Positions 8,080 through 63,557 are shown, counted from the stretch's first letter. The stretch is 64,000 nucleotides of DNA from Callorhinchus milii (GCF_018977255.1 NW_024704771.1:744001-808000), one strand, 5' to 3'. The notes: generated from the sequence alone by a model not told the origin. Program-made: numbers and translations.

Positions 8080-8080
8080 N
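8080..8080. other. Single N (possible assembly join)
   Basis: The only ambiguous base I saw in the window. Confidence 0.9.
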
Positions 8081-17929: not shown

Positions 17930-19940
17930 AGACACACAGTGTGACACACACTGTACATTCAGAGACACACATACTCTCTCTCTGACCCACACTCATATAC
18001 ACACGGTGTCGCACACTGAGACACACCCTCTCACACACTCTCTCTCTCTAACTGCATTATACACTGTAAACACAATCTTATACACTCTGTCGCACACACT
18101 AAACACACATGTGCTCTTTCTGTTTCACACACGCTGTACACACAGTCTGATACTCTGTCAGGCGCACACACTGTACACACTGAGATCAAGTGTCACACAC
18201 ACTACACACACGATGTCACAAACACTACACTGAGATACACACTATCACACATACTATACACACTGTCACACACACTGAGACAGTGTCACACACACTGTCC
18301 ACACTAAGACACACTGTCACACACTGTACAAACACTGAGACACTGTCACACACACTGTGTACATTGAGACACACTGTCACACACACACTGTGTAGACTGA
18401 GCCACAGTCACACACACACTGTGTACATTGAGACACACTGTCACACACACACTGTGTAGACTGAGCCACAGTCACACACACACTGTGTACATTGAGACAC
18501 ACTGTCACACACACTCTATCACATACACAATGTACATCTATACACACACACTTGTACACTCGCTGTGCACACACATACACTCTTTAACACACCCTCTTTC
18601 TGTGCACACACACACACTCTTATACTCCCTCTCTGTGCAAAAACACACTGTTGCACATTGTCTCTGTACACACACACATTGTTTTATACTTTCTCTTTCT
18701 GTGCACACACACTCTTGTTCACTCTCTGTGTGCACACAGACATTTTTATACACTCTCAGTGTATGAACCACACTCTTGTACACACATTCTCTCTTTCTCT
18801 GCACACACACACACACACTGGGACACAATCTCTCTCTCTGTGCACACACACACTCTCTCTGTGCACACAGTCTTGTACTCTCTCTCTCTGAACACACATA
18901 CACACTCTCTACCACATACACAATGTACACACACACTCTTACAAACAATCTTGTACACTCTCTCTGCACACAGACACTCTCTGTATGTCACACACTGACA
19001 CACACTCTCTCTCTACACACACTCTTGTACACACACTCTCTCTGCACACATTCTCTCTACACACACACACTTGTACACTCTCACTGTGCACACACAGTCT
19101 TACACAGACTCTCTCTGTGCACACACTCTCTCTCTTCACACACACTGTTGTACACTCTATCTCTCTGTGCACACACAACAGTCTTGTACAGACTATCTCT
19201 CTCTCTGCACACACACACACTCTCTCTCTCTGCGCACACACTCTCTCTCTGCACCCACACTCTCTCTGCACACACACTGTTGTACTCTCTCTCTCTGTGC
19301 ACACACACACACTCTCTGCACACACACTGTTGTACTCTCTCTGTGCACACACTCTGTCTGCACACACACTCTGTCTGCACACACACTGTTGTACACTCTA
19401 TCTCTGTGCACACACAACAGTCTTGTACAGACTCTCTCTTTCTGTGCACACACATACACTCTCTCTGCACATACACACTCTCTGTGCACACTCTCTATCT
19501 CTCTGCACACACACTTTTGTACTCTCTCTCTCTGTGCACACACACTCTCTGCACACACACTGTTGTACTCTCTCTCTCTGTGCACACTCTCTATCTCTCT
19601 GCACACACACTGTTGTACACTGTATCTGTCTGTGCACACACAACAGTCTTGTACATAATTTCTCTCTCTCTCTGTGCACACATTCTCTCTCTCTGCACAC
19701 ACACTCTCTCTGCACACACTGTTATACTCTCTCTGTGTGCACACACACACTCTCTGCACACACACTGTTGTACTCTCTCTGTGTGCACACACAACAGTCT
19801 TGTACAGACTCTCTCTCTCTGTTTGCACACACTTACACTCTCTGTGCACACACACTCTCTCTCTGTGCACATACACACTCTTTATCTCTCTGCACACACA
19901 CTGTTATACACACACTCTCTCTCTCTGTACACACACACAG
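17930..19940. repeat. Compound CA/CT microsatellite and minisatellite array
   Basis: Recurrent cacacactgttgtactctctctctgtgca-like units. Confidence 0.9.
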
Positions 19941-19950
19941 ATCAGATGAA

Positions 19951-20032
19951 GGAAATTTCTCAGAAAACGATGTGTTTTAACAAACCCGGAAATTAAGCAG
20001 TTGCTGTTTTTGCTGCGGAACTGAAGGTAACT
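19951..20032 (+). promoter_or_regulatory. Candidate promoter / non-coding first exon of gene A (copy 1 of 3)
   Basis: GAS TTCTCAGAA 19957-19965, ETS CCGGAA 19986-19991, donor AAG|gtaact at 20026/20027. Copies have donors at 21625 and 23180. Confidence 0.45.
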
Positions 20033-23000: not shown

Positions 23001-24462
23001 CACACACACTCTCTCTCTGTGCACATACACACTCTTTATCTCTCTGCACACACACTGTTATACACACACACTCTCTCTCTGTACACACACACAGATCAGA
23101 TGAAGGAAATTTCTCAGAAAACGATGTGTTTTAACAAACCCGGAAATTAAGCAGTTGCTGTTTTTGCTGCGGAACTGAAGGTAACTGTGAGGAGTGACCA
23201 GACAGCAATGTGAGGAGTGACCAGACAGCAATGTGAGGAGTGACCGGGCCAGACAGCAATGTGAGGAGTGACCAGACAGCAATGTGAGGAGTGACCGGGC
23301 CAGACAGCAATGTGAGGAGTGACCGGGCCAGACGGCAATGTGAGGAGTGACCGGGCCAGACAGCAATGTGAGGAGTGACCAGACAGCAGTGTGAGGAGTG
23401 ACAGGGCCAGACAGCAGTGTGAGGAGTGACCGGGCCAGACAGCAACGTGAAGAGTGACCAGGCCAGACAGCAATGTGAGGAGTGACCAGGCCAGACAGCA
23501 GTGTGAGGAGTGACCAGGCCAGACAGCAATGTGAGGAGTGACCGGGCCAGACAGCAGTGTGAGGAGTGACCTGGCCAAACGGCAATGTGAGGAGTGACCT
23601 GGCCAAACGGCAATGTGAGGAGTGACCAGGCCAGACGGCAATGTGAGGAGTGACCAGGCCAGACGGCAATGTGAGGAGTGACCGGGCCAGACAGCAATGT
23701 GAGGAGTGACCGGGCCAGACAGCAATGTGAGGAGTGACCGGGCCAGACAGCAATGTGAAGAGTGACCGGGCCAGACAGCAGTGTGAGGAGTGACCTGGCC
23801 AAACGGCAATGTGAGGAGTGACCTGGCCAAACGGCAATGTGAGGAGTGACCAGGCCAGACGGCAATGTGAGGAGTGACCAGGCCAGACGGCAATGTGAGG
23901 AGTGACCGGGCCAGACAGCAATGTGAGGAGTGACCGGGCCAGACAGCAGTGTGAGGAGTGACCAGGCCAGACAGCAGTGTGAGGAGTGACCAGGCCAGAC
24001 AGCAATGTGAGGAGTGACTGGGCCAGACAGCAGTGTGAGGAGTGACCTGGCCAAACGGCAATGTGAGGAGTGACCTGGCCAAACGGCAATGTGAGGAGTG
24101 ACCAGGCCAGACGGCAATGTGAGGAGTGACCAGGCCAGACGGCAATGTGAGGAGTGACCGGGCCAGACAGCAATGTGAGGAGTGACCGGGCCAGACAGCA
24201 ATGTGAGGAGTGACCGGGCCAGACAGCAATGTGAGGAGTGACCAGGCCAGACAGCAATGTGAGGAGTGACCGGGCCAGACAGCAATGTGAGGAGTGACCG
24301 GGACAGACAGCAATGTGAGGAGTGACCGGGCCAGACGGCAATGTGAGGAGTGACCGGGACAGACAGCAATGTGAGGAGTGACCGGGCCAGACGGCAATGT
24401 GAGGAGTGACCGGGCCAGACGGCAATGTGAGGAGTGACCAGGCCAGACAGCAATGTGAGGAG
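20030..24462 (+). repeat. 28-bp minisatellite arrays (20030-21140, 21630-22655, 23185-24462)
   Basis: Unit gtgaggagtgaccgggccagacagcaat, with 23-bp deletion variants; roughly 37-46 units per array. Confidence 0.95.
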
Positions 24463-24572
24463 CTGCTTTCAACATCAACACTGAACATCACAGGACTTTT
24501 CCCCACTTTATATTGTGGGGAATATTTGAGCTGCACTTTCCCTGTTTGTGGGGCTATAACCAGATTTCCACA

Positions 24573-24583
24573 GAAACCGAAAC
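24573..24583 (+). promoter_or_regulatory. ISRE-like element (also at 21251-21261 and 22766-22776)
   Basis: GAAACCGAAAC fits the GAAANNGAAA IRF/ISGF3 consensus; ~690 bp upstream of the gene A ATG. Confidence 0.5.
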
Positions 24584-25260
24584 CTCTGGACATCGCCATT
24601 CCGGACACACGATTAATTTACTGTTAACAGTGAAGATTCTTCTCTTTCAGAACAAAGCCTCAACAGTCAGTGTCGAAAATTGTTATTTTACCCTTAAAAT
24701 AACGCCTTAACTTTACTGCGATTCCAGTTACAGGATTCACTGGTTTCACTTTCACATGTGGTGATGTGGAGTTTAAATATGAAATAAATGTTCTCTATTG
24801 TCAGGTTTGTGTCAGTAGTAAAGCGGGAGCTCTGCAGTCAGTTTATTCCCAGTTTGTGGTTTAAACGCTGAGAATTGGAGGCAAGTGAGGAGGGAAGGGA
24901 ATGGGAGCTCCTCTCTGACCTGCACCATGTTGGGGTGAATAAGGAGCGGCTGTGAGGAGGGGGAGGGGAGGGGGACATTACAGCACTTACACATAACATG
25001 TTTCATGTTTCTTCCCCAAACCATCTGATGGAGACCCCCAGTGCGGGGCCAGGGGGGGCCTCACTGTCACAGTTAAAGATCCCACATCACTATTCCAACA
25101 GAGAAGGCAGTTTGTTCGCTGTGGGTGTGAATGCAAACAACATGTTTTATTAATTATGTTTTATATTTTATTGATTATATTTGATCACAAATCTCTGTGT
25201 GTAATGATCTGATTTGCTGTGTTGTAACCAGTTCTGATCCCATTGTGAAGGTCCTCGAAG

Positions 25261-28416: not shown

Positions 28417-28536
28417 ACGAGTTCTTTCCCAAAGTGCCAGTGGGTTTGGTGGTTTCCGCACTGCTCTTAGGACTTGCCATATTGGTGCTGAGTGTTCTTG
28501 TCCCCTACAGTTTAAAACAGCGCCGAGAGATCAAAG
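28417..28536 (+). CDS. Gene A transmembrane exon (120 nt)
   Basis: DEFFPKVPVGLVVSALLLGLAILVLSVLVPYSLKQRREIK; same length and phase as the gene B TM exon. Confidence 0.9.
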
Positions 28537-29269: not shown

Positions 29270-29287
29270 ATCTTGAGAAGAGAGTGG
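29270..29287 (+). CDS. Gene A cytoplasmic microexon (18 nt, DLEKRV)
   Basis: ttttgtatcctccag| ... |gtaagt, phase 1-1. Confidence 0.75.
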
Positions 29288-31142: not shown

Positions 31143-31169
31143 AGTGGAAAAGGATTCGCAGCTGCGCAG
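31143..31169 (+). CDS. Gene A pre-B30.2 microexon (27 nt, EWKRIRSCA)
   Basis: ttcttcttgtttccag| ... |gtaaga; splices in frame to VTVTLDP. Confidence 0.88.
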
Positions 31170-32371
31170 GTAAGAGTCTGAGTGACCAAGTAACCAACAT
31201 CCAACACACTGCCCCCCCCACACACACACACAATCACATCACCCCCCACACACACACACACACAATCACCCCCCACACACACACACAATCACATCACCCC
31301 CCACACACACACACACACAATCACATCACCCCCCACACACACACACAATCACATCACCCCCCACACACACACACAATCACATCACACCCCACACACACAC
31401 ACAATCACATCATCACCACACCCCCAACACACAGACCCTGACACTCCCATCCGCTTACAAACACACACATCCCTCACACACATTCCCCCACACACACCCT
31501 CACATCCCCTCACACACTCAAATGCCCCCCCACACACATTCACCCCACCCCGCACACCCCCTCACATTTCCCCACACGCTCACATCCCCCCACACACTCA
31601 CAACCCCCCACACTCTCACATCCCCCCACACGCTCACATCCCCCACACCCTCACATCCCCCACACCCTCACATCCCCCACACCCTCACATCCCCCCAGAC
31701 ACTCACATCGCCCCACACACTCACATCCCCCCACACACCCTCAAATCACCCCACGCGCTTACATTCCCCCACGCGCTCACATCCCCCCACACACTCACAT
31801 CCCCCCACACGCTCACATCCCCCCACACCCTCACATCCCCCCACACCCTCACATCCCCCCACACCCTCACATCCCCCCAGACACTCACAAACCCCCACAC
31901 CCTCACATCCCCCCACACGCTCACATCGCCCCACACACTCACATCCCCCCACACACCCTCAAATCACCCCACGCGCTCACATTCCCCCACGCGCTCACAT
32001 CCCCCCACACGCTCACATCCCCCCACACGCTCACATCCCCCCAAACGCTCACATTCTGCCACACACTCACATCCCCCCACACACCCTCAAATCACCCCAC
32101 GCGCTCACATTCCCCCACATACATACCCTCACATCTACTCCACACATAGATCCTCACATACACCCCCATTCACACATGCCCCCACACACACCCTCACAGC
32201 CCCTCACACACACACCATCACAGCTCATCCCCCACAAACATCCTTATATCCCTGAACACACACACCCCATACACCACCACCAACACACACATCCTCACAG
32301 CCACCTCACACCCACAACAGATCCCCCCCACCCACAAATACCCACACATCACCCCAAACACACACGGAGAT

Positions 32372-32880
32372 TGGTACCTGTAAGAATGCGGGCAGCAGAG
32401 TTTTGGATCACCTGGATTTTATGGATGGTAGTAGAGGGGAGACCGGCGAAGAGGGTGTTTGAATAGTACAGCCGAGAGGTGACAAAGGCATGGACCAGGG
32501 TTTCAGCGGCTTTTGGAGTGAGGTATTGGCGGAGACGGGCAATGTGTCGGAAGTGGAAGAAAGTGGTGCTGGTGAGGGACTGGATATGGGGGAGGATGGA
32601 TAACTGGGGGTCGAACCTGACACCAAGGTTGCATACGGGTTCGGATAGTTTTAGGGGGAGGTCGGGTAGATGGAGGAGGTGAGAAGCATGCAGTTTTAGA
32701 CTTTGACGAGAGCCAAAGTTTATGGCTTCCATCTTGTCGATGTTCAACTGAAGGAAATTCGCGCTTATCCAGCTCCTGAGGTCTGACAGACAGCTGACAG
32801 AACATCAGGGGATGGGGGGCTGCAAAGTGAGGCGGAAAAATAGAGTTGGATGTCATCCGCATACTTGTGGAAGTGTACCC
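32372..32880 (-). mobile_element. L2 fragment nested in the satellite
   Basis: NLGVRFDPQLSILPHI..ETLVHAFVTSRLYYSN..IQNSAARIL. Confidence 0.88.
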
Positions 32881-33849
32881 CATAATAATAATAATAATAA
32901 TAATAATAATCCTTGCATTTGATATAGCGCTTTTCACGTCGGGAGGACGTCCCAAAGCGCTTCACAGAACACACTGTAAAGTGAATTGACTGTATATTTG
33001 TGGGCGAACGCGGCAGCCAATTGCGCACAACAATATTCCCCCCACGCGCACACACACGCCCCCCAAACGCACACTCACGTTCCTCCACAACACTCTCACG
33101 TCCCCCCAGCACATGCACGCTCACGTTCCTCCACACACACCCTCATGTTGCTCCACATGAACCCTCACCTCCCCCCCACATGCACCCTCACATTCCTCCA
33201 CACACACACCTATTCATCACTCCCACACACACCCTCACGTCCCCTACACGCACCCTCATGAGCCCCCACAAGCACCCTCACGTCCACCCCACACGCACCC
33301 TCACGTCTGCCCCACACACAGCCTCACGTCTGCCCCACACACAGCCTCACGTCCACCCCACACGCACCCTCACATCTGCCCTACACGTAGCCTCACGTCC
33401 CCCACACACGCACCCTCACGTCCACCCCACACGCACCCTCACATCCACCCCACACGCACCCTCACATCCGCCCCACACGCACCCTCACCTCCCCCCACAC
33501 GCACCCTCACATCCCCCCCACACGCACCCTCACGTCCACCCCACACGCACCCTCACATCCACCCCACACGCACCCTCACGTCCGCCCCACACGCACCCTC
33601 ACCTCCCCCCACACGCACCCTCACATCCCCCCACACGCACCCTCACGTCCCCCCCACACGCAGCCTCACGTCCCCCCCACACGCACCTTTGTGTCCCCAA
33701 CACGAACCCTCACGTCCCCCGCACATGCACTTTCACGACCCCCACACGCACCCTTACGTCCCCCCCACCCGTAAACTCTCACCTCCCCCCATACGTGCCC
33801 TCACATCCCCCACACGCACCTTCACATCCCCCACATGCACCCTCACATT

Positions 33850-34175
33850 ATAATAATAATAATAATAATCCTTGCATTTGATATAGCGCTTTTCACGTCG
33901 GGAGGACGTCCCAAAGCGCTTCACAGAACATACTGTAAAGTGAGTTGACTGTATATTTGTGGGCGAACGCGGCAGCCAATTGCGCACAGCAATGTCCCAC
34001 AAACAGTCGTAGATTGAAAATGACCAATTTATTATTGTTTTTGGTTTTGGAGGGATTATTATTAGGCTCTGTGTGGAGTAAGGAAACTTGCCCAAGGTTT
34101 CGCCCTCTGCCTGGAATTGAACTCAGGTCTCTCACTTGCAAAGCGAGTGCTCTAACCACTGAGCTACAGGACTCC
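33850..34175 (-). mobile_element. Full-length tRNA-derived SINE with an L2-type tail
   Basis: Reverse complement begins GGAGTCCTGTAGCTCAGTGGTTAGAGCA (A box), GAGTTCAATTCC (B box), (TAT)n tail. Other headed copies at 44575-44948 (+), 51855-52228 (+), 56866-57176 (-) and 61730-62077 (-); many headless copies. Confidence 0.9.
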
Positions 34176-37100
34176 ACACACGCACCCTCACGTCCGCCCA
34201 TGAGGCACACTCACTTCCCCTGCACAAGCACGCTCATGTCCCCCGCACACACACCCTCAGACAGCTTCATGTCACCCCCACACGCACCCTCACGTCACCC
34301 CCACACGCACCATGTCTTGACCCTCACGCAGCCTCACGTCCCCCCCACATGTACCGTCATGTCCCCCGCACACGCACCATCACACAGCCTCACGTTCACC
34401 TCACACGCACCCTCACATCCCCCGCACATGCACCCTCACGTCCCCCGCACACTCACCCTCAAGCAGCCTCACGTTCACCCCACACGCACCCTCATGTCCC
34501 CCGCACATGCACACTAACGTCCCCCCACGCACGCACCCTCACGTCACCCCCAAACGCACCCTCACCTCCCCCCACACGCACCCTCACGTCACCCCCACAT
34601 GCATCCTCACGTCAACCCCACATGCACCCTCACGTCTCCCGCACACGCACCCTAACGTCCACTCCACACGCACCCTCACGTTCCCCCGACCCGTATCCTC
34701 ACGTCCCCCACACACGCACCCTCACGCACACCCCGCACGCACCGTCACATTACCCCCACACGCACCATTACGTGCACCACGCACATGACCCTCACGTCCC
34801 CTCTGCACGCGCACCCTCACATCTCCACCACACGCACCCTGACATTCCTCCACAACACCCTCACATCCCCCCCACACGAACCCTCACATCCCCCCCACAC
34901 GCACCCTCACGTTCATCCACACTCACCCTCACGTCCCCCGCACACGAACCCACACATCCCACATGAACCCTCACGTCACCCCCACATGCGCCCTGTCTTG
35001 ACCCCCACACACCCGCACTTCCTCCTCACACGCACCAACACGACCCCCCAACACACAGCCTCACATTGCCCCCACACGCACCTTTTCGTCGCCTCCACAC
35101 AAACCCTCACTTCCCCCCCAAACGCACCCTCACGTCCAACCTACACGCACCCTCACGTTCCCCGCACACACAACCTCATGTCCCCCGCACACGCACCCTC
35201 ACGTTTAACCCACACGCACCCTCATGTCCCCGCCACATGCACCCTCATGTCCCCCTCACACGCACCCTCACCTCACCCCGACACAACCTCACGTCCCCTA
35301 CCACGCAACCTCACGTCTCCCCACACGCACCCTCACGTCCCGCTCACATGCACCCTTACATCCACCCCCCATACACCCTCATGTCACCCCCACCATTCAC
35401 CCTCAAGTTGCCAGAAATGCAGCCTCACGTCACTCCCACAGGCACCCTCATCTCCATCCCACACGTAACTTCACGCCCCCACCCCACACGCACATTCGTG
35501 TCCCACACACGCCCCCTCATGTTCCTCCACTTACCCTCATGTTCCTCCACACACACACTCACATCCCCTGCACACACAATCTAACGTCCCCCCCCACACA
35601 CACCCTCACGTCCCCCCCACACGCACCCTCACATCCCCACACACGCACCCTCACGACTCCCCCCACACGCACCCTCACGTCCCCCCCACACGCGCCCTCA
35701 CATGCACCCCACAGGGACCCTCATAGCCCCCCACTCGCAACTTCACCTGGCCGCCATACGCACCCTCACGTCAATCCCACACGCACCCTCACGTCCCCCC
35801 CACACACACCCTCACATCCCCCCCACACGCACCCTCACGTCCCCCCACATGCACCCTCATGTCCCCCCCCACACGCACACTCAGGAGCCCCCAAACGCAC
35901 CCACACGTTCCCCCCCACCACACACACTCTCACATCGCTCCCACACGCACCCTCACATCCCCCTACTTGCATCCTCACGTCCCTCTCACACGCATCTTCA
36001 CATCCCCCACACCCACCCACACGACGCCACCACACGCACCCACACGACCCCCCGACATGCACCCTCACTTTCCCCCCCACACTCACATACACAACCTGAC
36101 TTGAGCCCCACACACACTGTCACTTCCCCCACACGCACGCTCACCTCCAGCCCACATGCACCATCACGTCCTCCCTATGCACACCCTCACATACCCGCGC
36201 ACCCTAACCTCCCTCCCACATGCACATTCACATCCCCCCCACACACTCACAACCCCACCACATGCACCCTCACGACCTCCCCACACGTACACTCACTTGC
36301 CCCTACACGCACCCTTACGTCCCCCCCAGACGCACCCTCACGTCTCCCCCACACGCATCCTCACATCACTCCCACATGCACCCTTACTTCCCCCACACAC
36401 TACCATCACGTACCCACCCACACATGCACCTTGTCTTGAACCCCACACACTAGCACATCCCCCTCACACACACCCTCACATCCACCCACACACACCCTCA
36501 TATCCCCCCACACACACCCTCACATCCCACCACGCGCACCCTCGCGTCCCCCCACACACACCCTCACCTCCCACAAACACACCCTCACCTCCCACACACA
36601 CACCCTCACGTTCACCCCCACACACACCTTTTCGTCATGCCCACACACACCCTCACTTCACCCCTCACGCACCCTCACGTACACCCCACATGCACCCTCA
36701 CGTCACCTCCACACGCACCCTCATGCCCCCCATACGCACCCTCACCTCGCCCCCACATGCACCCTCTCATCCTCCCCCCCCCACACGCAGCCTCACTTCC
36801 TCCCACATGCAACCTCATGTCCCCCCACACGCACATCCTCACGTTCCCCCCCATACGCACCCTCATCTCCTCCCCCGCACACACTCTCACATTCCCCCAC
36901 ACATACACTCACATCTCCCCACACACACCCTCACATCCCCCCCACACACACCCTCACATCGCCCCCACACGCACCCTCACGTCCCTCCCACACGCATCTT
37001 CACATCCCCCCACACGCACCCTCACATCCCCCCCATACACAATCTGACATGAGCCCCACTCACACCCTCACGTCCCCCCACGCGCACCCTCACCTGCCCC

Positions 37101-38228
37101 CACGCCCACCCTCACGTCCCCACCATGCGCACCGTCACCTCCCTCCCACATGCACACTCACGACCCCCCCCACGGGCACCCTCCGGACCCTCCCACATGC
37201 ACACTCACATGACCCAACATGCACACTCATGTCCCCCCAGACGCACCCTCACATCTCCCCTACACGCATCCTCACGTCGCTCCCACATACAGTTACTTCC
37301 CTCACACACTACCCTCACGTGCCCCCCACACATGCACCTTGTCTTGACCCCCACACACCAGCACATCCCCCTCACAAACACACTCATCTCAACCCCACAC
37401 ACACCCTCTCGTCCCCCAACACATGCAGCCTCACTTACCCCCACACGCACCCTCGCGTCTCCCCCACACACACCCTCACGTTCACCCCCAAACGCACCTT
37501 TTCGTCATGCCCACACACACCCTCACTTCTCCCACATGCAACCTCACGTCGCCCCACATGCGCAACCTCACGTCCCCCCCCACACGCACCCTCACCTCCA
37601 CCCCGCACCCTCACCTCCGCCCCACACACACCCTCACGACTTCCCAAACACACCCTCAAGTCCCCCCCACACGAACACTCATCTCCAGCTCACACGTACC
37701 CTCATGTCCCACCCACACGCACCCTCATTTACCCCCACATAATTACCTCACAGACCCCCAAAAGACACACCTTCAGCCCCACCCCACACAACCTCACATC
37801 CCACACAACTTCACATCCACCCCACACACAACCTCACTTCCCCTCACACACATACCCTCACATCCCCACCCCCACACACACACCCCCACACACACAACCA
37901 CACATACCCCCACACACACCCCCACTCATGCCCCCACACACACTCACACATACCTCCACACACACCCTCACATGACCACACACACGCACACACCCTCACA
38001 TCTCCCCCCCCCTCACACCCACACATCTCTCCCCCTCACACCCACACATTCCCTCCCACACAAACCCCTCCCCCACAGACACACAGACTCTCAGCCTTTT
38101 TTCTGGATTCTGTTCCCAGGAGACGTCGTTGTTTTACACAAAGGCTTCTCTCCCGGTGACGACGCTGAAGATCATCTTATTTATGATTGTAAATGTGTCC
38201 GACATTAATGGTCTGATTCTCCCTCCAG

Positions 38229-38758
38229 TTACAGTCACTCTGGATCCTGACACAGCCCATCCCCGGCTCATCCTGTCTGAGGACCTGACCAGTGTGAGAC
38301 ACGAAGACGAACTGCAGTCGCTCCCTGACTCCCCGAAGAGGTTTAGTGAAGATCCCATTGTCCTGGGATCTGAGGGCTTCACATCGGGGAGACATTACTG
38401 GGAGGTGCAGGTGGGCAACAAGTCATGGTGGACTGTGGGATTGGCCACAGAGTCTGTCAACAGGAAACAACTAATAACATGGACACCAGAGGATGGGGTC
38501 TGGGGGGTGGGGCTGTGGGGTGGGGACTGTTATGAGGCTCTGACGTCACCTCGTACCCGCCTGACCCTGACAGTGAGACCCGGGAAGGTCGGGGTTTACA
38601 TGGACTATGAGGGGGGACAGGTGTCATTTTACAACGCTGACAACATGGCTCATCTCCACACTTTCACCCAAACTTTCACTGAGAAACTTTATCCTCTGTT
38701 CAGTCCCGGGTATAATATTGATGGGGACAATCCTGAGCCTCTGACAATCTGCCGGTGA
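38229..38758 (+). CDS. Gene A terminal B30.2 exon (530 nt)
   Basis: Acceptor at 38228, TGA 38756-38758. Exon lengths sum to 1386 nt, an open 461-aa leader-IgV-IgC-TM-B30.2 protein. Confidence 0.93.
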
Positions 38759-49175: not shown

Positions 49176-49233
49176 ATGATGGAGAAGATTTTCATTGTGA
49201 TTTTCCTGTTTGAGATTCCGGCTTCACTTTCTG
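49176..49233 (+). CDS. Gene B (butyrophilin-like) signal-peptide exon
   Basis: cag|ATG ATG..MMEKIFIVIFLFEIPASLS, phase-1 donor gtgagc. The ATG is the first base of the exon, so an upstream non-coding exon is required. Confidence 0.82.
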
Positions 49234-50265: not shown

Positions 50266-50613
50266 ATTCTTTTATAGTTAATGGTCCACGTCAGCCTGTC
50301 CTCACAGCTCTGGGGAACGATGTCACTCTGGGATGTTGGTTAACACCAGGAGTGGCTGCAGATATGATGGACGTGGAATGGAGTAAATCTGATTCTGGGG
50401 ATGTGGTGCATTTATGTACAAGTGGAGAGGATCAACCTGATCAGCAACATGAAGCCTACAGAGGAAGAACCGAGCTCATTAGAGACGGGATGACTCGAGG
50501 AAACGTGTCTCTCAGACTGAAGAACGTGAGGTGCTCAGACCAAGGAGAATACACATGTTTTGTGGGATCAACAACAGATTTTGGTGAAACAACAGTGGTT
50601 GTGAAAGTTGAAG
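50266..50613 (+). CDS. Gene B IgV exon (348 nt)
   Basis: DSFIVNGPRQPV..VTLGCWL..VEWSK..AYRGRTELI..GNVSLRLKNVRCSDQGEYTCFV. Confidence 0.95.
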
Positions 50614-51249: not shown

Positions 51250-51525
51250 ATCGCAGACGGCTGCCCTTGATTTCCATGGCAGGTTACCAGGACTCGAGGC
51301 TTAAACTCACCTGCAAATCAAAAAGCTGGTATCCCAAACCTCGTGTGGTTTGGTTTGATAGGAGTGGAGCAGAGGTGAAAGCCAAGACTGAAACATGCAC
51401 TCAGGGGTCTGAAGACTGTTGGAAATGTGAAAGTAGCATTGATATAACCAGAGATTCTACAGACAGATTCACGTGTCTGACAGGAAACTTTCTGGAGGAA
51501 AAGAAGGCAAAGATCCAGGTATCAG
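51250..51525 (+). CDS. Gene B IgC exon (276 nt)
   Basis: DRRRLPLISMAGY..LTCKSKSWYPKPRVVW..FTCLTG..KIQVS. Confidence 0.93.
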
Positions 51526-52258: not shown

Positions 52259-52378
52259 AGGAGCTTTTCCACCGAGACCCAGACTGGATGGTGGCTTTCC
52301 TTGTGGCGTTCAGCCTTGTGCTTGGAGCAGTTGGTGTGTTGGTGTTCTTCTGCAGAAAACGATTGAAAAAAGTTAAAG
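52259..52378 (+). CDS. Gene B transmembrane exon (120 nt)
   Basis: EELFHRDPDWMVAFLVAFSLVLGAVGVLVFFCRKRLKKVK. Confidence 0.92.
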
Positions 52379-52449
52379 GTAATAAATGATTTTAAGTTTC
52401 CCCCAAAATATAATCTTTACTTTCATCCTTTATATAATCCATAACATAG

Positions 52450-54360: not shown

Positions 54361-54396
54361 TTTATGAAAATCTAAAAAAGGGATTTAAAAATCTGG
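54361..54396 (+). CDS. Gene B microexon 1 (36 nt, VYENLKKGFKNL)
   Basis: ttttattttccag| |gtaagt, phase 1-1. Confidence 0.82.
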
Positions 54397-55609
54397 GTAA
54401 GTAACAACATTACAAACATCCCCGAGCCTCAGCCTCCCGAGAGTCAGGTCCTCGGAGACCTACCACAAGCCCTTCCTGTGCTCTCTGGTGACCTCAGCAT
54501 TTACATATACACACACACCCAGACATATGCACACACACCCAGACATATACACACACACCCAGACATATACACACACCCAGACACAAGCACACAAGCACAC
54601 ACACAGAATCACAGAACAACCTGAACTAAACCCATCTCCTGTGGAATAAAGAAACATGTGACAATTCTGTGCAGATGAGGAGAATCTCAGTGTGTTTGAC
54701 TGTAGAGAGAAAGTGAAACTTACACTTTAACACAAATTAAATCATTCTGATACAATGAATGAATTAAAAAACATGATGTAAACGAGTCTATGAATGAGAT
54801 TCCACTCAGTTAGATTCTGTCCAAAATGTGACCTGAAACAACAATTTACATTGATACAACTGCCTCCATGCGCCGGGTCAGGGTGAAAGGGGAGATGACC
54901 GTACACACGGTTAAAGAGGAAGGTCTTCAGGTGCGATGAAAATGGTCAAAGAGTGGGGAGTGAGATGGAGGGATTGAGACAGGGAGTTCTGTGGGTTTGG
55001 TGGTTAGTGGTTGAAGACTTGGCCACCAATGGTGGGGCGGAGGGGAGTCAGGGATGAGCAGAAAGCCAGAGCCGCCCAAATGAAGGGGTGGGTAGAGGAG
55101 TGGGTTGTGAGCAGGTCGGAGAGGTAGGGAGGTGCTGGACATGAGGTGATTTGTCAGTGAGTGTGAGGATCTTGAAATGGATCTGTTCAGTGATAGGGAG
55201 CCGGTGGAGCCCGGCAAGGGCTGGAGTGATGGGGTATGGAGTTTGTTGTGGGTAATGTACCAAATGTTAAGGATTATTACTATTATCATTATTCACTTAT
55301 TGAGATTGTAAATGTCTAATCAGTTTTATCAGTTTCTACAGTGCAAAAAATCCCCATTCTTAATGTGAATTACAACACAAATTGTGAAATAAAAATAGAT
55401 GAGGAAGAAAATCTTATATTTTTGGTTTGTTCACTGGTTTCATTTCCTTCATTTGATGTGAGCACGTATCCTCCTATCACAGTGAGTTTGGAAAGTTTGA
55501 GCTTAAAGGAAAATAAAGAAACTGAATAAAATAAACCAGATAAGTTTGTTAACTTTTTTTTCAAAAATTTAAAATTACATTTTCTAAAACCTTTTCTTTT
55601 GTTTTAAAG

Positions 55610-55636
55610 ATAATGAACTGAAATCTGCCAAACAAG
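55610..55636 (+). CDS. Gene B microexon 2 (27 nt, DNELKSAKQ)
   Basis: cttttcttttgttttaaag| |gtacag. Confidence 0.75.
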
Positions 55637-55814
55637 GTACAGTACATTGTGTTATTGGCACTAAGTGTTTATGATGGAATTCCATCAGTGATGATGTCCC
55701 ATAAGTGAATCAATCAATGACGACTGACTTCAACATTCAAACCGTCTTCACTCAATGACTTTCAGTCTCGTGAGAAACTTTACATTGTTTATCAATATTT
55801 GTTTCTTTCTTTAG

Positions 55815-55841
55815 ACCAAAAATACATGAAAAAAACACTGG
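55815..55841 (+). CDS. Gene B microexon 3 (27 nt, DQKYMKKTL)
   Basis: tttctttctttag| |gtaagt. Confidence 0.82.
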
Positions 55842-56403
55842 GTAAGTTTTAATCTCCTGGAGCGTGAAATAAGTTTCCTTCTCATCGCGCCTCCCCTTGT
55901 TTTAAAGGATGATTCTGGGAAGGGTCAGTGGGAAAGGGAGTTAGTGAGAACTTTGGATAATGATAAGCTGTGAGGTTTCAGCAGGAAAAACATGAGCAAT
56001 TCCCCTCAATCCATCCTCTGTGGACCACAAGCCTTGCTTCTGGCCAACCCATGTCTAAACATTAGTAAACCCGGGAGCATGGCGCTGGGGAGAGGGTTCA
56101 TTCTGTATCAGACAGACACGGAAACTCTATACACAGTTTGTGGAACTCCGAATAGTTTGGTTTGGAGACTCTTAACCCCAGTGATGGGTTTGTGTGTGTG
56201 TCAGACTCTGATCAAAACTAAGTCCATGTGTTTTTTTTAATTGGTGAAAACAAACTCTGATTGGGATTTGGTGAGATCCTGAAGCCTCAGTGCTGAAGGG
56301 TTGTTTATCAGCTGAATCACAAGACTGTGAATAGGTTCAGTGTGTAACAGTGGGGGGTGATTTGTGCAAATAAACAATCAAAAAATATACTGTTCCCTTT
56401 CAG

Positions 56404-56430
56404 AACTGAAAAAACAGTTCACCAAATCAG
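56404..56430 (+). CDS. Gene B microexon 4 (27 nt, ELKKQFTKS)
   Basis: ctgttccctttcag| |gtactt. Confidence 0.75.
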
Positions 56431-57383
56431 GTACTTGATGACTTTATCCTCATTTACTGTTGTTGATGTTATTGATGTAGAATTGTGCTGCTTCTCAAAG
56501 GATCAATTATTATCACCTCTGATAAAGATAATAAATTAAATGTAAGAAATACGATTATATTAAGATTATAAGCAAAGTTTGACGTGAACTTTCAATGTAA
56601 AGGTTCAGTCATCTCACATCTACAAATGTGATCAGTTTGTCAGACTCTGTAACCTGGTGTGATCTGAACCCAGATATTGAGTTACATCGATAGATCACAG
56701 TAGAACAGAAGAAATGCTGAGGAAAAAAGCCCAATATCCATCCAGTTTGCCTTCCACCTTCCTGGCAGTCGCACACAAATATGTCCCAAACTACCTCTGT
56801 ACTATATCCCATAATGTTATTGCCTAAAAGAACATTTCTAATCTGTGTTTGAAAGAATCTACTCAATAATAATAATCCTTGCATTTGATATAGTGCTTTT
56901 CACATCTTCTAGATGTTTCAAAGCGCTTCACACAATGTACAGTAAAGTGAATTTACTGTATATTTGTGAGCGAAATGCTGCAGTCAATTACGCACAGCAG
57001 CGTCCCACAAACAGTCGAGGATTGAAGTGACCAATTTATTATTATTTTCCTTTCTAGAGGGATTATTATCAGGTGTGTGGAGTAAGGAAACTTGCCCATG
57101 GTTTTTCCCTGTGGGAATTGAGCCCAGGTTTCTCGCTTGCAAGGGGAGTGCTCCAACCACTGAGCTGCAGGACTCCACAGTGTCATTGGTGAGATCATAC
57201 TCTAAGTAAAGTCTGGACTCACCAATGACTTTCAAAGTGACCCGATTACCCCACTATTTCCATTTGCTATTGATCTTTTGATATATCCCAACAACAGATT
57301 TCAGAAGTAACATATATTGAAGTCTACAAAAGATGAAATTATAAGCAAAATCTTATTAAATTAAAACTTCTGTTTCTTTCCAG

Positions 57384-57410
57384 AGTGGGAGGTCGTTGAC
57401 AGTTGTAAAT
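57384..57410 (+). CDS. Gene B microexon 5 (27 nt, EWEVVDSCK)
   Basis: ttctgtttctttccag| |gtaagt; resembles gene A EWKRIRSCA. Confidence 0.82.
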
Positions 57411-57416
57411 GTAAGT

Positions 57417-57785
57417 TACCCCACATTACAGGCTGGTTATACACCCCACATTACAGGCTGGTTATACACCCCACATTACAGGCTGGTTATAGACCGCACA
57501 TTACAGGCTGGTTATACACCCCACATTACAGGCTGGTTATACACCCCACATTACAGGCTGGTTATACACCCCACATTACAGGCGGGTTATAGACCCCACA
57601 TTACAGGCTGGTTATACACCCCACATTATAGGCTGGTTATACACCCCACATTACAGGCTGGTTATACACCCCACATTACAGGCTGGTTATACACCCCACA
57701 TTACAGGCTGGTTATACACCCCACATTACAGGCTGGTTATAGACTCCACATTACAGGCTGATTACGGACCCCACATTACAGGCCG
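57417..57785 (+). repeat. 25-bp minisatellite, resuming at 61370-61437 after the L2 insertion
   Basis: Unit ttacaggctggttatacaccccaca. Confidence 0.95.
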
Positions 57786-57789
57786 GCAT

Positions 57790-60700
57790 AGATTAGTTTT
57801 CAGGTGCGTGCGTGCGCACGCAACAAAGAAAAAAAAAAACCTCTGCGCCCCCCCCCCCCCCCCCCCCAGGGTTCACATCAGAGCCCACTATGGTCCTGTT
57901 GCGTTCGCTGCCCCAATCTACGGGATAATGCCATCCACCTGACCGCTCGCTCCCGGTCCCCGCGTGCGCACTATGGCTGCCGCTTTGACCCGAGCCCCCG
58001 AGCCCCCTCCCGCCCCCCTTCTCTCTCCCCCCAAACCCTCCTCCCTCTGCATCTCTCCCGCTCTCTCCTCCTCTCTCTCCGTCCCTCTCGTCTTCTATCC
58101 CCACTTGACCCTCCCACAACCTCCGTCTGCTCCAGTCTGGGAATCCTCCGCCGGGCTCACCGTGGCACTCGGCGTTGGCTGTCCAGCAGCAGCCACACCG
58201 ACTGCCCCATTCTCCACCACACTCGCCACCCACCCCGGGCACAGACCCGGGGAGTCAACCTCTCCTCCCTTAGCCCCATTCCCCCCACCCCAGCCTCACA
58301 ACCTGGACCCCCCTCCCCTCCCACACACCCTTCTGTCAACCGCTCCCTCCACATCGGACTGCAAAATGTCCGCTCCCTCTGCAACAAGGCCCTGGTCATC
58401 AACGATCTCATCCTTGATGAGAACGTTGACATCATGGCATTAACAGAAACCTGGCTCACCCCAGGCGACACCTTCCCCCTCACGGAGGCCACGCCACCCG
58501 GCTACACCTCCCACCACATCCCTCGCCCCAACCGCCGTGGCGGTGGTGTTGCCCTTATCTCAAGGACACCACTTGCCCTATCCCCCTACTCCACTGGCTC
58601 TTTCCCCTCCTTTGAGCACCTCACCCTCTCCCACCCCTCATTCCTCTCCCTTAAAATCCTCCTCCTCTACCGGCCCCCTAAAACCTCTCCCACCTTCATC
58701 TCTGACATTTCAACACTCCTCACATCTCTTTGCCTCTGCTCTGATCGCCTCATCATCCTGGGCGACTTTAACCTACACTTCACCCCCTCCTGCTCCATCT
58801 CCACAGACTTCTCTTCCCTGCTCTCCTCACTCAACCTCTCCTTACACATAAACTCCCCCACTCACAGTCACGGCCACCCACTCGATTTGGTGATCACCCG
58901 GGGCCTCAGTGTCTCGGATGTCACTATTACCGACAAGGCCATCTCTGACCACTACTTCATCTCCTTCACCACCTCCACCCCCCTCCCCACCTCCACCAGA
59001 CCCACCACCATCTTCTACCGCCCTTGGAAGAAGTTACCCCCACAATCCCTAACCGATGCCTTGGAGTCCTCTGAACTCCTCTCCCTCTGGCCTTCAACCC
59101 TCACCGACCCCTCTTCTCCTCTCTCCCTCCTCCACAATACCCTCTCCTCCACACTCGATACTCTTGCCCCCATCACTTCCCGCACTGTCTCCTACTCCCG
59201 CTCCTCCCCCTGGTACACCACCCACCTCCGCTCACTGAAAAGCCAGGTGCGGGCTGCTGAACGCACCTGTGTCAAATCTGGCCTAACGGTCCACCGACAA
59301 ATCTGGCTGGACCTCCTCAAAATTTACCGCTCCACTCTAGCCTCGGCCAAGTCGTCCTTCTACTCCAGGATAATCCTGGAGGCGAAGAACAACCCCAGGC
59401 TACTGTTTTCCACCACAACCCGACTCCTCCGTCCCCCCCGCCACCCCGCGCAGGTCATCTCCTCCAACCTTCACTGCGAGGAGATGCTGGATTTCCTTGA
59501 ATCCAAGATCAAGGGAATCCGCTCCGCGGTCACTTCCCCTCCAACTTCCACCCACCACCCACCCCTTCCCTCCCACACTCCGACTCCTACCCATCCTCCC
59601 CTACACACCTTCGTACCCGTTTCCCCACCCTCTGTCACTGAACTCATCCTATCCCTAAAACCAACCACCTGCTCCCTTGACCCCATCCCCACTCCACTCC
59701 TTATCTCCCAGCTCCACTTTCTTGCCCCACATATCACTGACATCATCAACCTGTCCCTCTCCTCTGGCTCTGTCCCCATTCCATTAAAAACTGCCATCAT
59801 CACGCCCACCCTGAAAAAACCCTCCCTTGATGCGTCGCAGCTATCAAGCTACCGGCCCATCTCCAACCTCCCCTTTCTCTCCAAGGTCTTGGAAAGAGTT
59901 GTCGCCTCCCAACTGCGCTCTTTCCTTTCCACCCATTCTCTTTTCGAACCCCTTCAGTCAGGTTTCCGTGCTGCCCATAGCACAGAAACTGCCCTGGTCA
60001 AGGTCACCAATGATATCCTGACCATCTGTGACCAGGGCTCCCTCTGTCTCCTCGACCTATCGGCAGCATTCGATACGGTCGACCACGCTATCCTACTCCA
60101 CCGCTTGTCCTCCCACCTCAACCTTCAAGGCACTGTCCTTGAATGGTTTAGGTCGTACCTTTCTCACCGTCTTCACTTTGTCTCGACGAATGGCTTCTCC
60201 TCCACCCCCCGTACTGTCTCATGTGGTGTCCCTCAGGGCTCTGTCCTTGGTCCCCTCCTCTTCACCCTCTATATGCTCCCCCTTGGTGACATCATCCGCA
60301 GACATGGAGTTAACTTCCACATGTATGCGGATGACACCCAACTCTACCTTTCCTCCTCTACTCTCAACTCCACGACCACCGATGTCCTGACAGCTGCCTG
60401 TCCGACATCGAGTCCTGGACGAGAGACAACTTTCTTCAGCTCAACGTGCGAAAAACCGAGGCCCTCCTGATTGGCTCACGTCAGCGCCTCCGCACCTCAG
60501 GCGCTGACACCATCAGCATCCAAGGCTGCACTCTCCACCTCTCAAAGCCAGTCAGGAACCTCGGCGTTTTGTTCGACCCTGAGCTGTCCTTTCTCCCTCA
60601 CATCCGCACCACAACTGGCACCGCCTTCCATCACCTCCGGAACATCGCCAGACTACGGCATTACCTCACCCCTCACGCTGCTGAAACCCTGGTTCACGCC

Positions 60701-61369
60701 TTTGTCACCTCAAGGCTGGACTATGGGAACTCTCTCCTCGCCGGCCTTCCCGCCACCTCCCTCCACAAGCTGCAGGTCATTCAGAACTCTGCAGCTCGTG
60801 TACTGTCCCGCACCAGGCTTCGGGACCACATCACTCCCACCCTCGCTCGCCTCCACTGGCTCCCCATCCCCCAGAGGATTGATTTCAAGATCCTCATCCT
60901 CACCTACAAGGCCATTCACGGCCTCGCTCCCTCCTACCTCTCCAACCTACTATCCCCCTACCTACCTGCCCGTACCCTCCGTTCCTCTGGCTCTGGTCTG
61001 CTCCACGTCCCCCGCCCCAACCGCCCTACCATCGGTGGTCGGGCCTTCAGCCTCTCAGCCCCCAGGCTCTGGAACTCCATCACCCAGTGCCTTCGCCGCT
61101 TCCTCCCTTTCCTCCTTCAAGGCCGGTCTCAAAACCTTTTTCTTTGACCGTGCCTTCAGCTCCCCTCTCGACGCTCTACCCCCTCCTCGCTCCCTCCCTT
61201 TCCTCTCCTCACCCTGACCATTTCCCCCCTCCTCGCTCCCTCCCTTCCCTCCCCTCACCCTGACCATTTCCCCCCTGCTCGGGTCATGACCCAACTGTGC
61301 AGCGCCTTGGGACGTCCTCCTGACGTGAAAGGCGCTTTATAAATGGAATCTTGTTGTTGTTGTTGTTGT
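57790..61369 (+). mobile_element. Near-intact L2-clade LINE (APE endonuclease + reverse transcriptase)
   Basis: Frame open from 57804: [37 protein letters not shown], then [10 protein letters not shown] and YADD (60324-60335). 1-nt frameshift near 60393, continuing in 60446-61147; (TTG)n tail at 61351-61369. Confidence 0.95.
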
Positions 61370-61685
61370 GGTTATAGACCCCACATTACAGGCTGGTTAT
61401 AGACCCCACATTACAGGCTGGTTATAGACCCCACATTGTCAGTGTGCGGAGGAAGTTGCTCTAATTGACGATGTGTAGAAATTATCAGCAAAATGCAGGT
61501 TCATCAATTGATTAACAAAATATCGCTCATAACCTAATTTTCAGTCTAATTTCCAGTTGTGTAAAGTGCACACATCACACTGTAGATGTGTACCCAATAA
61601 ATACTGTATGTGTGATAGGACGGGTGGGTGTAGCAGAGACGGTTGTGTCAAGTGGACTCACTGATAAACTTGTGTTTTCTCTCAG

Positions 61686-61712
61686 GCTGCAAGGATCTTC
61701 TCGTGGGGTTTG
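61686..61712 (+). CDS. Gene B microexon 6 (27 nt, CCKDLLVGF)
   Basis: tgtgttttctctcag| |gtaaga. Confidence 0.78.
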
Positions 61713-62188
61713 GTAAGAGACTTGATTTAATACAATGCTTCATCACTTCGTTGAGACGTCTCAAAGCGCTTCACAGAATATACTGCAAGGAGAATTGACT
61801 ATATTTTCTGGGCAAATCGCGGCTGCTAATTGCACACAGACAGCAGTGTCACACAAACAGTCATGAATAAATCACCAAATTACTATTTTTGGGAAAGGAA
61901 TTATTACCCCCGGAAAGAGATCCACTAATCGACTAACAAGCGGGTTCCTACTTCCTGCGAGGTAAACAGAGACAAGTGGAGTAAGGAAACTTGCCCAACG
62001 TTTCACCCTACCAGGAACCAAACCCAGTTCCTCTCTTTCTTCCAAGGCGAGTGCTCTAACCACTGAGCTAAAGGACTGGAATATTAATGCAATAAAGAAA
62101 ATGATTGTGTAATGACGCATAAACACAACTGTATAAAACAATCTCAATTGAACAAATTGATTCTAACTAAATTTTCTTTCATTTCCAG

Positions 62189-62215
62189 TCAAGGCCAGAA
62201 TCCACAACTATGCAG
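62189..62215 (+). CDS. Gene B microexon 7 (27 nt, VKARIHNYA)
   Basis: ttttctttcatttccag| |gtaaga. Confidence 0.82.
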
Positions 62216-63290
62216 GTAAGACATTAATATAGTATAAATGATACAATTCAGAACTGCTCAGATCCCACCCCAGATTTAGCACAAAGATGTACAGACAGAA
62301 GGTCCCAGTCTGGTCTGTGCTGAGGTATCTGATCTCAGTCGGGGAGGGAGGGGGCTCTACACATGGCCTCAGGGCCCGGATATGGATAGACAATAAGCCA
62401 AAGTCACTGTTCCTCATCACATTCAGGGATTCCCCCCCACTCCCATCCCAGCCTTTCTGTAAATACCGGGTGAGGAGAGGATCAGGCTGTGATGCCCTCA
62501 ATGGTTGAATAGCCAACCAACACTGGCTGTCCAGGCTCCCACATGAACAAGTCACTAAAGACAGCTACATGCCAGACACAGTGAGTGTCAGCACTGAGCC
62601 CGACTCCTGCTCATCGCCCTCTGCACGGTCACTAAAGCTGAGATGACATGTTGAGGTTGTAGAGATGTCAGTCCAATCCTGTGCCCCAGGCGCTGGGCAC
62701 AACAGCTGTTAGTGTGTGACTGGAGAATGGTATGTGACTGTACCTGGGGAAGTTTCTGATAGACCAAATACTACATACACTGTTATTGTATTTACTACAT
62801 TACTTAGTGTCATCCACACTGTCATCTGTCGTAAAATACTCACTTTATATTGTGTGAAGGAATCGGATTACTGACCAATAACAGTCAGTTGTCATGACTG
62901 GATGCTCATGTGATGTCCTCGTGTGAGTCCCTCTTGACTCAGGACATCAGTGTGTTTCAACTAACGATGACCACATTATGGTGACATGGTGTTTGTCCAC
63001 AGCAAACTCTGATCTTGTTGCCTGATCAGCAGCCCATATATTTATATATAACTGACCCCCCCTCCCCCCCCCCGATCAATCAACCTGTCCACTCAGTTTC
63101 AAGATCTAGATTAGTCCACATCGCCTCTCGCAGAGGGACACCGCACCCAAATAACACCCAGACCTCACCTACACCAAACCTATACCACCCAAACCACAAC
63201 TACAGCACACCCAGACCTCATACAGACCACACAGGGCACACAGCTACATGTCTTAATGATAACAGCTGACAACATTCTGCTTTCTTACAG

Positions 63291-63317
63291 GTTACGAGGA
63301 GGTTCTCACAGAATTAG
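63291..63317 (+). CDS. Gene B microexon 8 (27 nt, GYEEVLTEL)
   Basis: ttctgctttcttacag| |gtaagg. Confidence 0.8.
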   Translation, partial: VTRRFSQN

Positions 63318-63521
63318 GTAAGGTATTTGGGTCAGTTTGATAAACAGCCATTCTGTCACTCCCCTTTCCCCAAATAAATGTTAAAATATATTAATGGGGA
63401 GGGGGAGCGAGGAGGGGAATATAAAGCAGTTTGGGGAACAGAGAAAATGTGACTGGCAAAACCGTATAAAACCATCCTCATCAAATAAATCTATACCAAC
63501 TGAACTTCCTTTATTTTACAG

Positions 63522-63557
63522 AAAAGACCCAATTTGGGTTGTACAGAAGTTATGCAG
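63522..63557 (+). CDS. Gene B microexon 9 (36 nt, EKTQFGLYRSYA); gene continues beyond the window
   Basis: cttcctttattttacag| |gtaaga. Confidence 0.8.

Follow-up and report, generated by a model that had tools for sequence, protein, structure and literature searches.

What does a string of nine microexons downstream of a transmembrane (TM) exon encode, and is the resulting protein segment an invention of one gene or an ordinary property of its family? The gene in question, here called gene B, lies in a 64,000-nucleotide stretch of the Callorhinchus milii genome (GCF_018977255.1, NW_024704771.1:744001-808000; hereafter the window), begins at 49176, and continues past the window end. The + strand of the window carries butyrophilin-like (BTN-like) genes arranged in tandem, and the closest database proteins are all from C. 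milii. The nine microexons (m1 to m9) are genuine, and what they encode is the cytoplasmic stalk, predicted to be helical, of a BTN-like protein. The initial annotation of the window had assigned the same role to these apparently unannotated exons, and all nine are already contained in a RefSeq protein (XP_042200686, P0003) and a UniParc protein (UPI000457575E, P0001).

The cytoplasmic tails of chicken BG proteins are a textbook example of microexon arrays. They are encoded by 21-nucleotide (nt) exons, and groups of these exons expand and contract by duplication in a tandem family (PMC4046983, PMC5938342). The cytoplasmic exons of BG are alternatively spliced (PMC4046983), and intron read-through produces alternative tails (PMC4046983, PMC5938342). 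Mammalian BTN stalks are made of two to five short exons, mostly 21-nt heptads, and skipping of a heptad exon is documented for macaque BTN3A (PMC6790196). Butyrophilins signal from the cell interior to γδ T cells via a juxtamembrane coiled coil, the length and register of which matter (PMC10665462). In BTN3A1 and BTN2A1, this coiled coil dimerises and controls the IgV/B30.2 topology (PMC10665462, PMC10533412).

Nine microexons in a single open frame

All nine microexons are on the + strand and unique in the window, and each is preceded by a polypyrimidine tract and AG and followed by GT. The first, m1, is 36 nt long (54361-54396) and encodes (V)YENLKKGFKNL. The next seven are 27 nt each: m2 (55610-55636), (D)NELKSAKQ; m3 (55815-55841), (D)QKYMKKTL; m4 (56404-56430), (E)LKKQFTKS; m5 (57384-57410), (E)WEVVDSCK, the sole exon with a final T; m6 (61686-61712), (C)CKDLLVGF; m7 (62189-62215), (V)KARIHNYA; and m8 (63291-63317), (G)YEEVLTEL. 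The last, m9, is again 36 nt long (63522-63557) and encodes (E)KTQFGLYRSYA. Joined in phase 1-1, the exons give 261 nt and 87 residues without a stop, in agreement with the initial annotation, and many stops interrupt the two remaining frames.

Splice sites were scored with a simple splice-site weight matrix. The acceptors of the nine microexons score 6.9-11.8 and the donors 4.5-11.0, the weakest pair being that of m2 (6.9/4.5). At those thresholds, the 9.3-kb region contains nine open candidates of 27 or 36 nt. The remaining 54 kb of the + strand yield two, including a true exon of gene A, the paralogue upstream of gene B, and the whole - strand yields none. Dinucleotide shuffling of the region (200 shuffles) yields 0.13 candidates on average and 2 at most.

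Upstream of the microexons, also on the + strand, are the exons of a BTN-like receptor. The leader exon (49176-49233, phase 0 to 1) encodes MMEKIFIVIFLFEIPASLS plus one base and is followed by GT; its peptide matches the leaders of RefSeq models P0163-P0166. The IgV exon (50266-50613, 348 nt) and the IgC exon (51250-51525, 276 nt) are both in phase 1-1, and in the paralogue P0166 these domains give Pfam matches to V-set and to C2-set_3 "butyrophilin Ig-C", respectively. The TM exon (52259-52378, 120 nt) ends with the basic anchor CRKRLKKVK. Leader, IgV, IgC, and TM exons are all of phase 1 and join in frame, and matches to BTNL3 have values of 1e-28 to 1e-32. Gene B possesses two features by which BTN and BTNL genes are recognized: an IgV and an IgC encoded by one phase 1-1 exon each, and a single-pass TM exon, with a TM segment predicted to be helical, behind which comes a series of very short phase 1-1 exons. 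All 13 coding exons of gene B within the window are open and have canonical splice sites.

Paralogues extend the picture to the B30.2 domain. P0003 and P0001 run through TM, the nine microexons in order and at 91-97% identity, and then B30.2. By exact spliced mapping, P0003 falls on a tandem paralogue (L001, 91-97% identical to gene B) with the 36/27x7/36 layout and a B30.2 exon 13 kb past m9. A further locus, L002, holds two more copies. Copy 2 has m1-m9 and B30.2; copy 1 has m1-m6 and a divergent seventh exon, ENNRHRIYA, and lacks m8, m9, and a B30.2 exon of its own. The B30.2 exon is spliced to m9 in L001 and in L002 copy 2, and P0003 gives PRY and SPRY Pfam matches. L001 and both L002 copies preserve exon lengths, frames, and AG/GT sites, and the m2 sequence is identical in all three. 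Across the C. milii paralogues, the stalk has 2, 7, or 9 exons.

Some of the RefSeq models of these copies are incomplete or composite. P0003 corresponds to the TM-stalk-B30.2 half of a BTN-like gene, the Ig exons of which are modelled separately as P0164. In XP_042200745 (P0166), the seven microexons of L002 copy 1 are joined to a B30.2 exon that belongs to the next copy, 55 kb away, with an entire gene and an assembly gap in between. P0003 carries the RefSeq name "nuclear factor 7, ovary-like". Like TRIM proteins and nuclear factor 7, it has a helical region followed by a B30.2 domain that shares 42-48% identity with TRIM21 structures, but those proteins are soluble and contain RING, B-box, and coiled coil, whereas P0003 has Pfam matches to PRY and SPRY only and an N-terminal TM helix. 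We reject this identity, as P0003 has no RING or B-box, starts with a TM helix, and has Ig exons just upstream. The TM helix and the Ig exons in the same locus indicate that the name is an annotation artefact.

The 27-nt exon array in other vertebrates

RefSeq proteins were mapped onto their genomic loci, and the exons in the TM-to-B30.2 interval were measured. The homology search with P0003 is dominated by B30.2 matches and led, via a Narcine model, to elasmobranch genes. A 120-nt TM exon is followed by twelve 27-nt stalk exons in a basking shark (Cetorhinus) BTN2A1-like gene (XP_078422643), by ten in a red stingray (Hemitrygon) BTN3A3-like gene (XP_072889953), and by two in a zebra shark (Stegostoma) BTN1A1-like gene. 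The BTN1A1-like gene of sterlet sturgeon (Acipenser; XP_058868292) also has a 120-nt TM exon and stalk exons of 36, 27, 27, and 27 nt. For the tetrapods, the values are 21, 21, and 33 nt in duck BTN1A1 (TM exon of 105 nt) and 21, 27, and 27 nt in orangutan (Pongo) BTNL3 (TM exon of 114 nt), consistent with the exon sizes that the initial annotation had given, mostly 21 nt plus a 27-nt exon in mammals. Every stalk exon mapped in the six species is in phase 1-1. In addition, a skate RNA-assembly contig (L009, run SRR13269355; 1803 nt, intronless) encodes a protein with twelve 9-residue modules that is essentially identical to XP_055486586 of little skate (Leucoraja).

Since the stretch between TM and B30.2 is made up of 27-nt phase 1-1 exons in other species too, the module is inherited. 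The 27-nt arrays of basking shark, red stingray, zebra shark, and sterlet do not support the proposal of an independent expansion using a 9-residue module. Judged from these gene models, strings of 27-nt exons appear to be the normal, ancient build of the BTN family in sharks, rays, and sturgeon. A word-based protein search with the stalk alone gives no match outside C. milii; since such a search needs shared 5-residue words, it says little on distant stalk homology.

From the RefSeq models of shark, rays, and sturgeon, we define a fish-type BTN stalk by a TM exon of 120 nt with an uninterrupted run of 27-nt phase 1-1 exons behind it. Gene B shows this pattern, and none of its stalk exons has the 21-nt length of the tetrapod-type "heptad" stalk. 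Elasmobranch and sturgeon BTN-like genes share with gene B the IgV, IgC, 120-nt TM, and consecutive 27-nt phase 1-1 exons; their B30.2 comes after the 27-nt array, the 18-residue periodicity is common to them and gene B, and their terminal EW(K/D)R exon has a counterpart in m5. The sturgeon array, like that of gene B, opens with a 36-nt exon. Unlike these genes, gene B has four exons (m6-m9) after the EW exon, the last of which is 36 nt long. The sequence similarity between the stalks is weak outside m1 and m5, and the hydrophobic period is 3.5 residues in gene B and ~3.6 in elasmobranchs.

Two exons make one 18-residue repeat

The 87-residue stalk contains no proline, 17 K/R, and 13 D/E. A single period, of 3.5 residues, dominates its hydrophobicity (power 84; shuffles, 25; P<0.003), as is characteristic of a heptad-type amphipathic helix, and this period spans the entire stalk irrespective of exon borders. 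Elasmobranch stalks show hydrophobicity peaks at 2.25 (9/4), ~9, and 3.6 residues. In each of the six stalks tested, self-similarity has peaks at lag 18 and lag 36 (single-lag P ≤0.005 each), and P remains ≤0.04 in five of them after correction for all lags (2-30). For gene B, the top lag is 18, with a value of 0.00 versus a null of -0.82 +/- 0.25 (corrected P=0.04 for lags 2-30). Lag 9 is not raised in any of the six stalks and is below the null in gene B. Therefore, the repeat unit is two exons, corresponding to 18 residues and five alpha-helical turns, and the 9-residue module singled out by the initial annotation is half of a protein repeat rather than a repeat itself. Elasmobranch stalk exons (L003, L004, and L009) alternate between two types, one xYxKLxxEF-like and the other xKEKxAxxA-like; this alternation gives rise to the self-similarity at lags 18 and 36 and to the strong 2.25-residue hydrophobic harmonic.

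An AlphaFold2 model of P0003, run with a 24-sequence alignment, has a mean predicted local distance difference test (pLDDT) score of 87. The predicted helices comprise residues 18-93 (TM and m1-m5), 97-112 (m6-m7), and 117-133 (m8-m9), and are followed by B30.2. The first helix breaks at GSC, just before the CKCC cluster, and a break at SYAG separates the second helix from the third. As m6-m7 and m8-m9 are each helical in the model, each of these two-exon units would contribute a short helix and a turn. Foldseek matches the model best to full-length BTN2A1 and BTN3A1 chains from cryo-electron microscopy (~300 aligned columns), and the B30.2 domain of P0003 is 45-49% identical to those of BTN3A1 and TRIM21. 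The stalk is predicted to be alpha-helical and of coiled-coil type. The cluster at the m5/m6 junction, SCKCCKD (57402-61696), holds three cysteines in the order C-K-C-C, and the codon of the middle one is split as T|GC.

m5 resembles the terminal exon of other arrays

By sequence, the last exon before B30.2 is recognisably the same across species. It reads EWKRIQSNA in sharks, EWDRMRSHA in rays, EWKQIQAES in sturgeon, and EWKRIRSCA in gene A, and in tetrapods (D)WRRKHGQA in orangutan and (A)WRRCLLPQNR in duck. The best match of m5 is this terminal "EW" exon in every comparison; the BLOSUM62 score is 27 for the gene A exon and 14-17 for those of four species, compared with a null of -4.5 +/- 6.8. 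Elsewhere the terminal "EW" exon directly precedes B30.2, whereas m5 is trailed by four more exons. The match of m5 identifies m1-m5 as the inherited array and implies that m6-m9 were added between this former terminal exon and B30.2. Other exons have counterparts as well: the last nine residues of m1 are akin to exon 1 of ray arrays (ALKKSAGAL), m4 ends with KS as does the penultimate exon in sharks, rays, and sturgeon, and m8 resembles the xYxKLxxEx exons of elasmobranchs.

Within the extension, the DNA of m7 and m9 is homologous, including ~100 nt of flank on each side (local score 47 versus a shuffle maximum of 23), and m9 equals m7 plus a 9-nt insertion. In addition, m6 and m8 share 16 of 27 nt. 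The homology of m7 with m9 and of m6 with m8 suggests that a unit of two exons was duplicated in tandem. The exons that look specific to the gene B lineage are m6-m9 alone.

Exon inclusion

Among the 512 inclusion patterns of the nine exons, 496 are free of junction stops. The earlier statement that exons can be left out in any combination without loss of frame is thus accurate for most patterns, but joining m5 to m9 gives TAA. No skipped isoform is found among the C. milii gene models, each of which includes every microexon of its copy, and seven transcript-derived or RefSeq proteins of the little-skate XP_055486586 gene are all full length at 553 aa. These models and proteins do not support the idea of a combinatorially tunable spacer. 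Skate proteins of 553 and 527 aa were considered as splice isoforms differing in 9-residue modules, and this was rejected, as they are products of separate genes and 32% identical. We infer that the microexons are mostly constitutively included and that stalk-length differences between paralogues come from genomic exon duplication or loss rather than from splicing.

Two read-through forms do have counterparts in RefSeq. Read-through of the m1 donor (54393-54404) leads to ...NLGK-stop, and P0163 and P0167 (281 aa) end with KNLGK. Read-through of the TM donor (52375-52389) leads to ...KVKGNK-stop, and P0165 (270 aa) ends with KKVKGNK. Such forms would be isoforms without B30.2, reminiscent of human BTN3A2.

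A probable inherited array with an extension

We consider it likely that the microexons encode the stalk of a type I BTN-like receptor (leader-IgV-IgC-TM-stalk-B30.2) that combines an inherited m1-m5 array with an m6-m9 extension and is mostly constitutive. Gene B is one copy in the tandem gene array. Its 120-nt TM exon would be followed by the inherited array, ending in m5 as the conserved "EW" exon, and m6-m9 would represent two extra two-exon units between m5 and B30.2. Of these, m8-m9 would have arisen from tandem duplication of m6-m7, with a gain of 9 nt in m9. The stalk probably dimerises and would set the distance and the rotational register between membrane and B30.2, as in human BTN3A1 and BTN2A1. 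Its length would vary between paralogues by genomic duplication or loss of exon pairs, a process also documented for 21-nt exons in chicken BG (PMC4046983).

Several observations weigh against this interpretation. The B30.2 exon of gene B lies beyond the window end, and inclusion of the exons of this copy is read from gene models of paralogues; the RefSeq models of the array are visibly imperfect, some being split, fused, or misnamed (L001 1424-32877; L002 3001-70144). Between tandem copies, the identities of microexons and flanking introns are 98.1 versus 97.3%, 97.3 versus 97.7%, and, for L002 copy 1, 86.9 versus 91.9%. The microexons are no better conserved than the introns, so purifying selection is not demonstrated. 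When L002 copy 1 (14507-15025) is compared with the window (61686-62215), m6 differs at 7 of 27 positions and m7 at 10 of 27, and the introns are ~90% identical. The pLDDT is only 59-81 over m4-m9, and the probable dimerisation and signalling role of the stalk are argued by analogy. As to conservation, the tandem copies are too young, or the stalk is too free to vary, for it to prove function. The faster change of m6 and m7 in L002 copy 1, with length, frame, and splice sites kept, could be due to relaxed constraint or diversifying selection.

Alternatively, the nine exons may be a cassette set of which any combination can be skipped, so that the spacing of B30.2 from the membrane could be tuned combinatorially. 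This is compatible with the phase 1-1 borders and multiple-of-3 lengths of all exons and the large number of stop-free patterns, with the weaker splice scores at m2 and at the m4 donor, and with the variation in exon number among paralogues; heptad skipping in macaque BTN3A (PMC6790196) and alternative splicing of cytoplasmic exons in chicken BG (PMC4046983) are precedents. However, the exon-number differences between paralogues are genomic, the C. milii models and the seven skate proteins contain no skipped form, the m5-m9 join creates a stop, and most splice sites are strong. Moreover, given the 18-residue repeat and the 3.5-residue hydrophobic period, loss of one 9-residue exon would displace the seam of hydrophobic residues by roughly half a turn. 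We therefore regard a cassette set as unlikely.

We judge it quite improbable that the gene B copy, or its m6-m9, is a decaying member of a fast-turnover array in which splice sites are kept by recency alone. Exons that are no better conserved than introns would be expected of such a copy, and L002 copy 1, without m8, m9, and a B30.2 exon of its own, the 3.6-kb retrotransposon that only the window copy carries in intron 5, and the truncated RefSeq forms that stop just past the TM exon or m1 would all be in keeping with decay. Yet intronic retrotransposons are commonplace, the 13 coding exons in the window are all open with canonical splice sites, three copies hold all nine exons at equal lengths, and the 26 substitutions in L002 copy 1 have introduced no stop and destroyed neither frame nor splice site. 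A chance run of splice-like motifs in intron or intergenic DNA has next to no probability: although each exon is too short to be called singly, the nine exceed the shuffled expectation of 0.13, share one phase, length class, and frame, occur in independent gene models, and are homologous to the arrays of other species.

Relation to known stalks

Mammalian BTN3A1, BTN2A1, and BTNL3 resemble gene B in domain order and in the short phase 1-1 exons between TM and B30.2, and a 27-nt W(R/K)R exon is present in mammalian BTN and BTNL genes (21+27+27 in Pongo BTNL3). They have just 2-5 stalk exons, mostly of 21 nt, whereas gene B has nine exons, 87 residues, and three predicted helices. Chicken BG genes resemble gene B in using long arrays of phase-compatible microexons for a cytoplasmic coiled coil, but their exons are 21 nt long (7, sometimes 8, residues), they have a lone IgV and no B30.2, and their arrays are much longer. 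Gene B departs from the BG type in having IgV and IgC and 27-nt exons, and in the B30.2 of its paralogues.

The BTN/BG microexon stalk is already well known (PMC6790196, PMC4046983, PMC5938342), and its 27-nt variant is annotated in RefSeq and seemingly undescribed. Apart from the m6-m9 extension, the gene B locus is an ordinary member of this variant. Full-text literature searches, with most subscription journals outside their scope, find no paper describing 27-nt exon arrays or an 18-residue repeat in fish BTN genes. As to the label of an undescribed system, the exons are already in RefSeq models. The reading of the locus as a novel system fails by the initial annotation's own criterion of one isoform with an architecture ordinary for fish BTN-like genes.

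We tentatively propose, at slightly less than even confidence, that the ancestral gnathostome BTN stalk was an 18-residue (7+11, five-turn) repeat built from pairs of 27-nt phase 1-1 exons, which survives in chimaeras, sharks, rays, and sturgeon. The 21-nt heptads of tetrapod BTN and chicken BG would then be a later replacement, and the 27-nt exon before B30.2 a relic. Duplication would proceed in steps of one two-exon unit, and these steps would determine stalk length, and hence the reach and rotational register of B30.2, differently in each paralogue; the gene B lineage would have added two helix-plus-turn units past the ancestral terminal exon. If the oldest jawed-vertebrate lineages indeed pair 27-nt exons into 18-residue repeats, they would provide an ancestral state of the BTN/BG cytoplasmic tail and would offer a graded set of naturally occurring stalks (2 to 12 exons) in which to study the effects of length and helical phase on B30.2 function. 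At the gene B locus, the practical value is mainly an improved annotation of split, fused, and misnamed RefSeq models.

Neighbouring genes and repeats

A B30.2 exon at 104-615 (+ strand) belongs to a further-upstream BTN-like gene, indicating that the window sits inside the tandem BTN-like array. Gene A extends over ~25.2-38.8 kb, also on the + strand. Its TM exon (28417-28536, 120 nt) is followed by an 18-nt microexon (29270-29287), (D)LEKRV, and by the 27-nt terminal stalk exon (31143-31169; splice scores 11.2/11.0), which is of the EW(K/D)R..S.A type and immediately precedes the B30.2 (PRY-SPRY) exon (38229-38758). According to the splice scan and the peptide motif, the gene A stalk consists of just 18+27 nt, and the layout is identical in RefSeq P0174/L006. 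A blastn-short search of each gene B microexon ±60 nt against the upstream 49.5 kb finds no paralogous microexon copy in gene A.

Just upstream of gene A, a satellite block (18400-24610) contains three near-identical units of ~1.55 kb with - strand open reading frames (ORFs) of 509-530 aa and shorter internal repeats, and is flanked by a CA-rich microsatellite. The last intron of gene A (31400-38100) contains ~6.5 kb of CA/CT-rich simple repeat, the translation of which gives PHTHTLTSP-like ORFs. A comparable CA/CT-rich block precedes the B30.2 exon in L001 (28382-33477; 77% identity over 5 kb), and its presence in both makes it a conserved feature of the tandem repeat unit.

Intron 5 of gene B holds a 25-nt minisatellite on the + strand at 57418-57783 (14.6 copies) and 61369-61437 (2.8 copies), the first copy of which starts 8 nt past the m5 donor. 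The minisatellite is split by a non-long-terminal-repeat retrotransposon of ~3.6 kb with endonuclease and reverse-transcriptase ORFs and a frame break; the insertion is absent from L001. Copies of a short interspersed nuclear element of ~330 nt are scattered in the introns of gene A and gene B (33850-34185, 56865-57181, and ~61900-62090) and are also found in L001. The head of the element is tRNA-Ala-like and is called by ARAGORN at 34102-34172 (- strand). A lone N occurs in the window at 8080.

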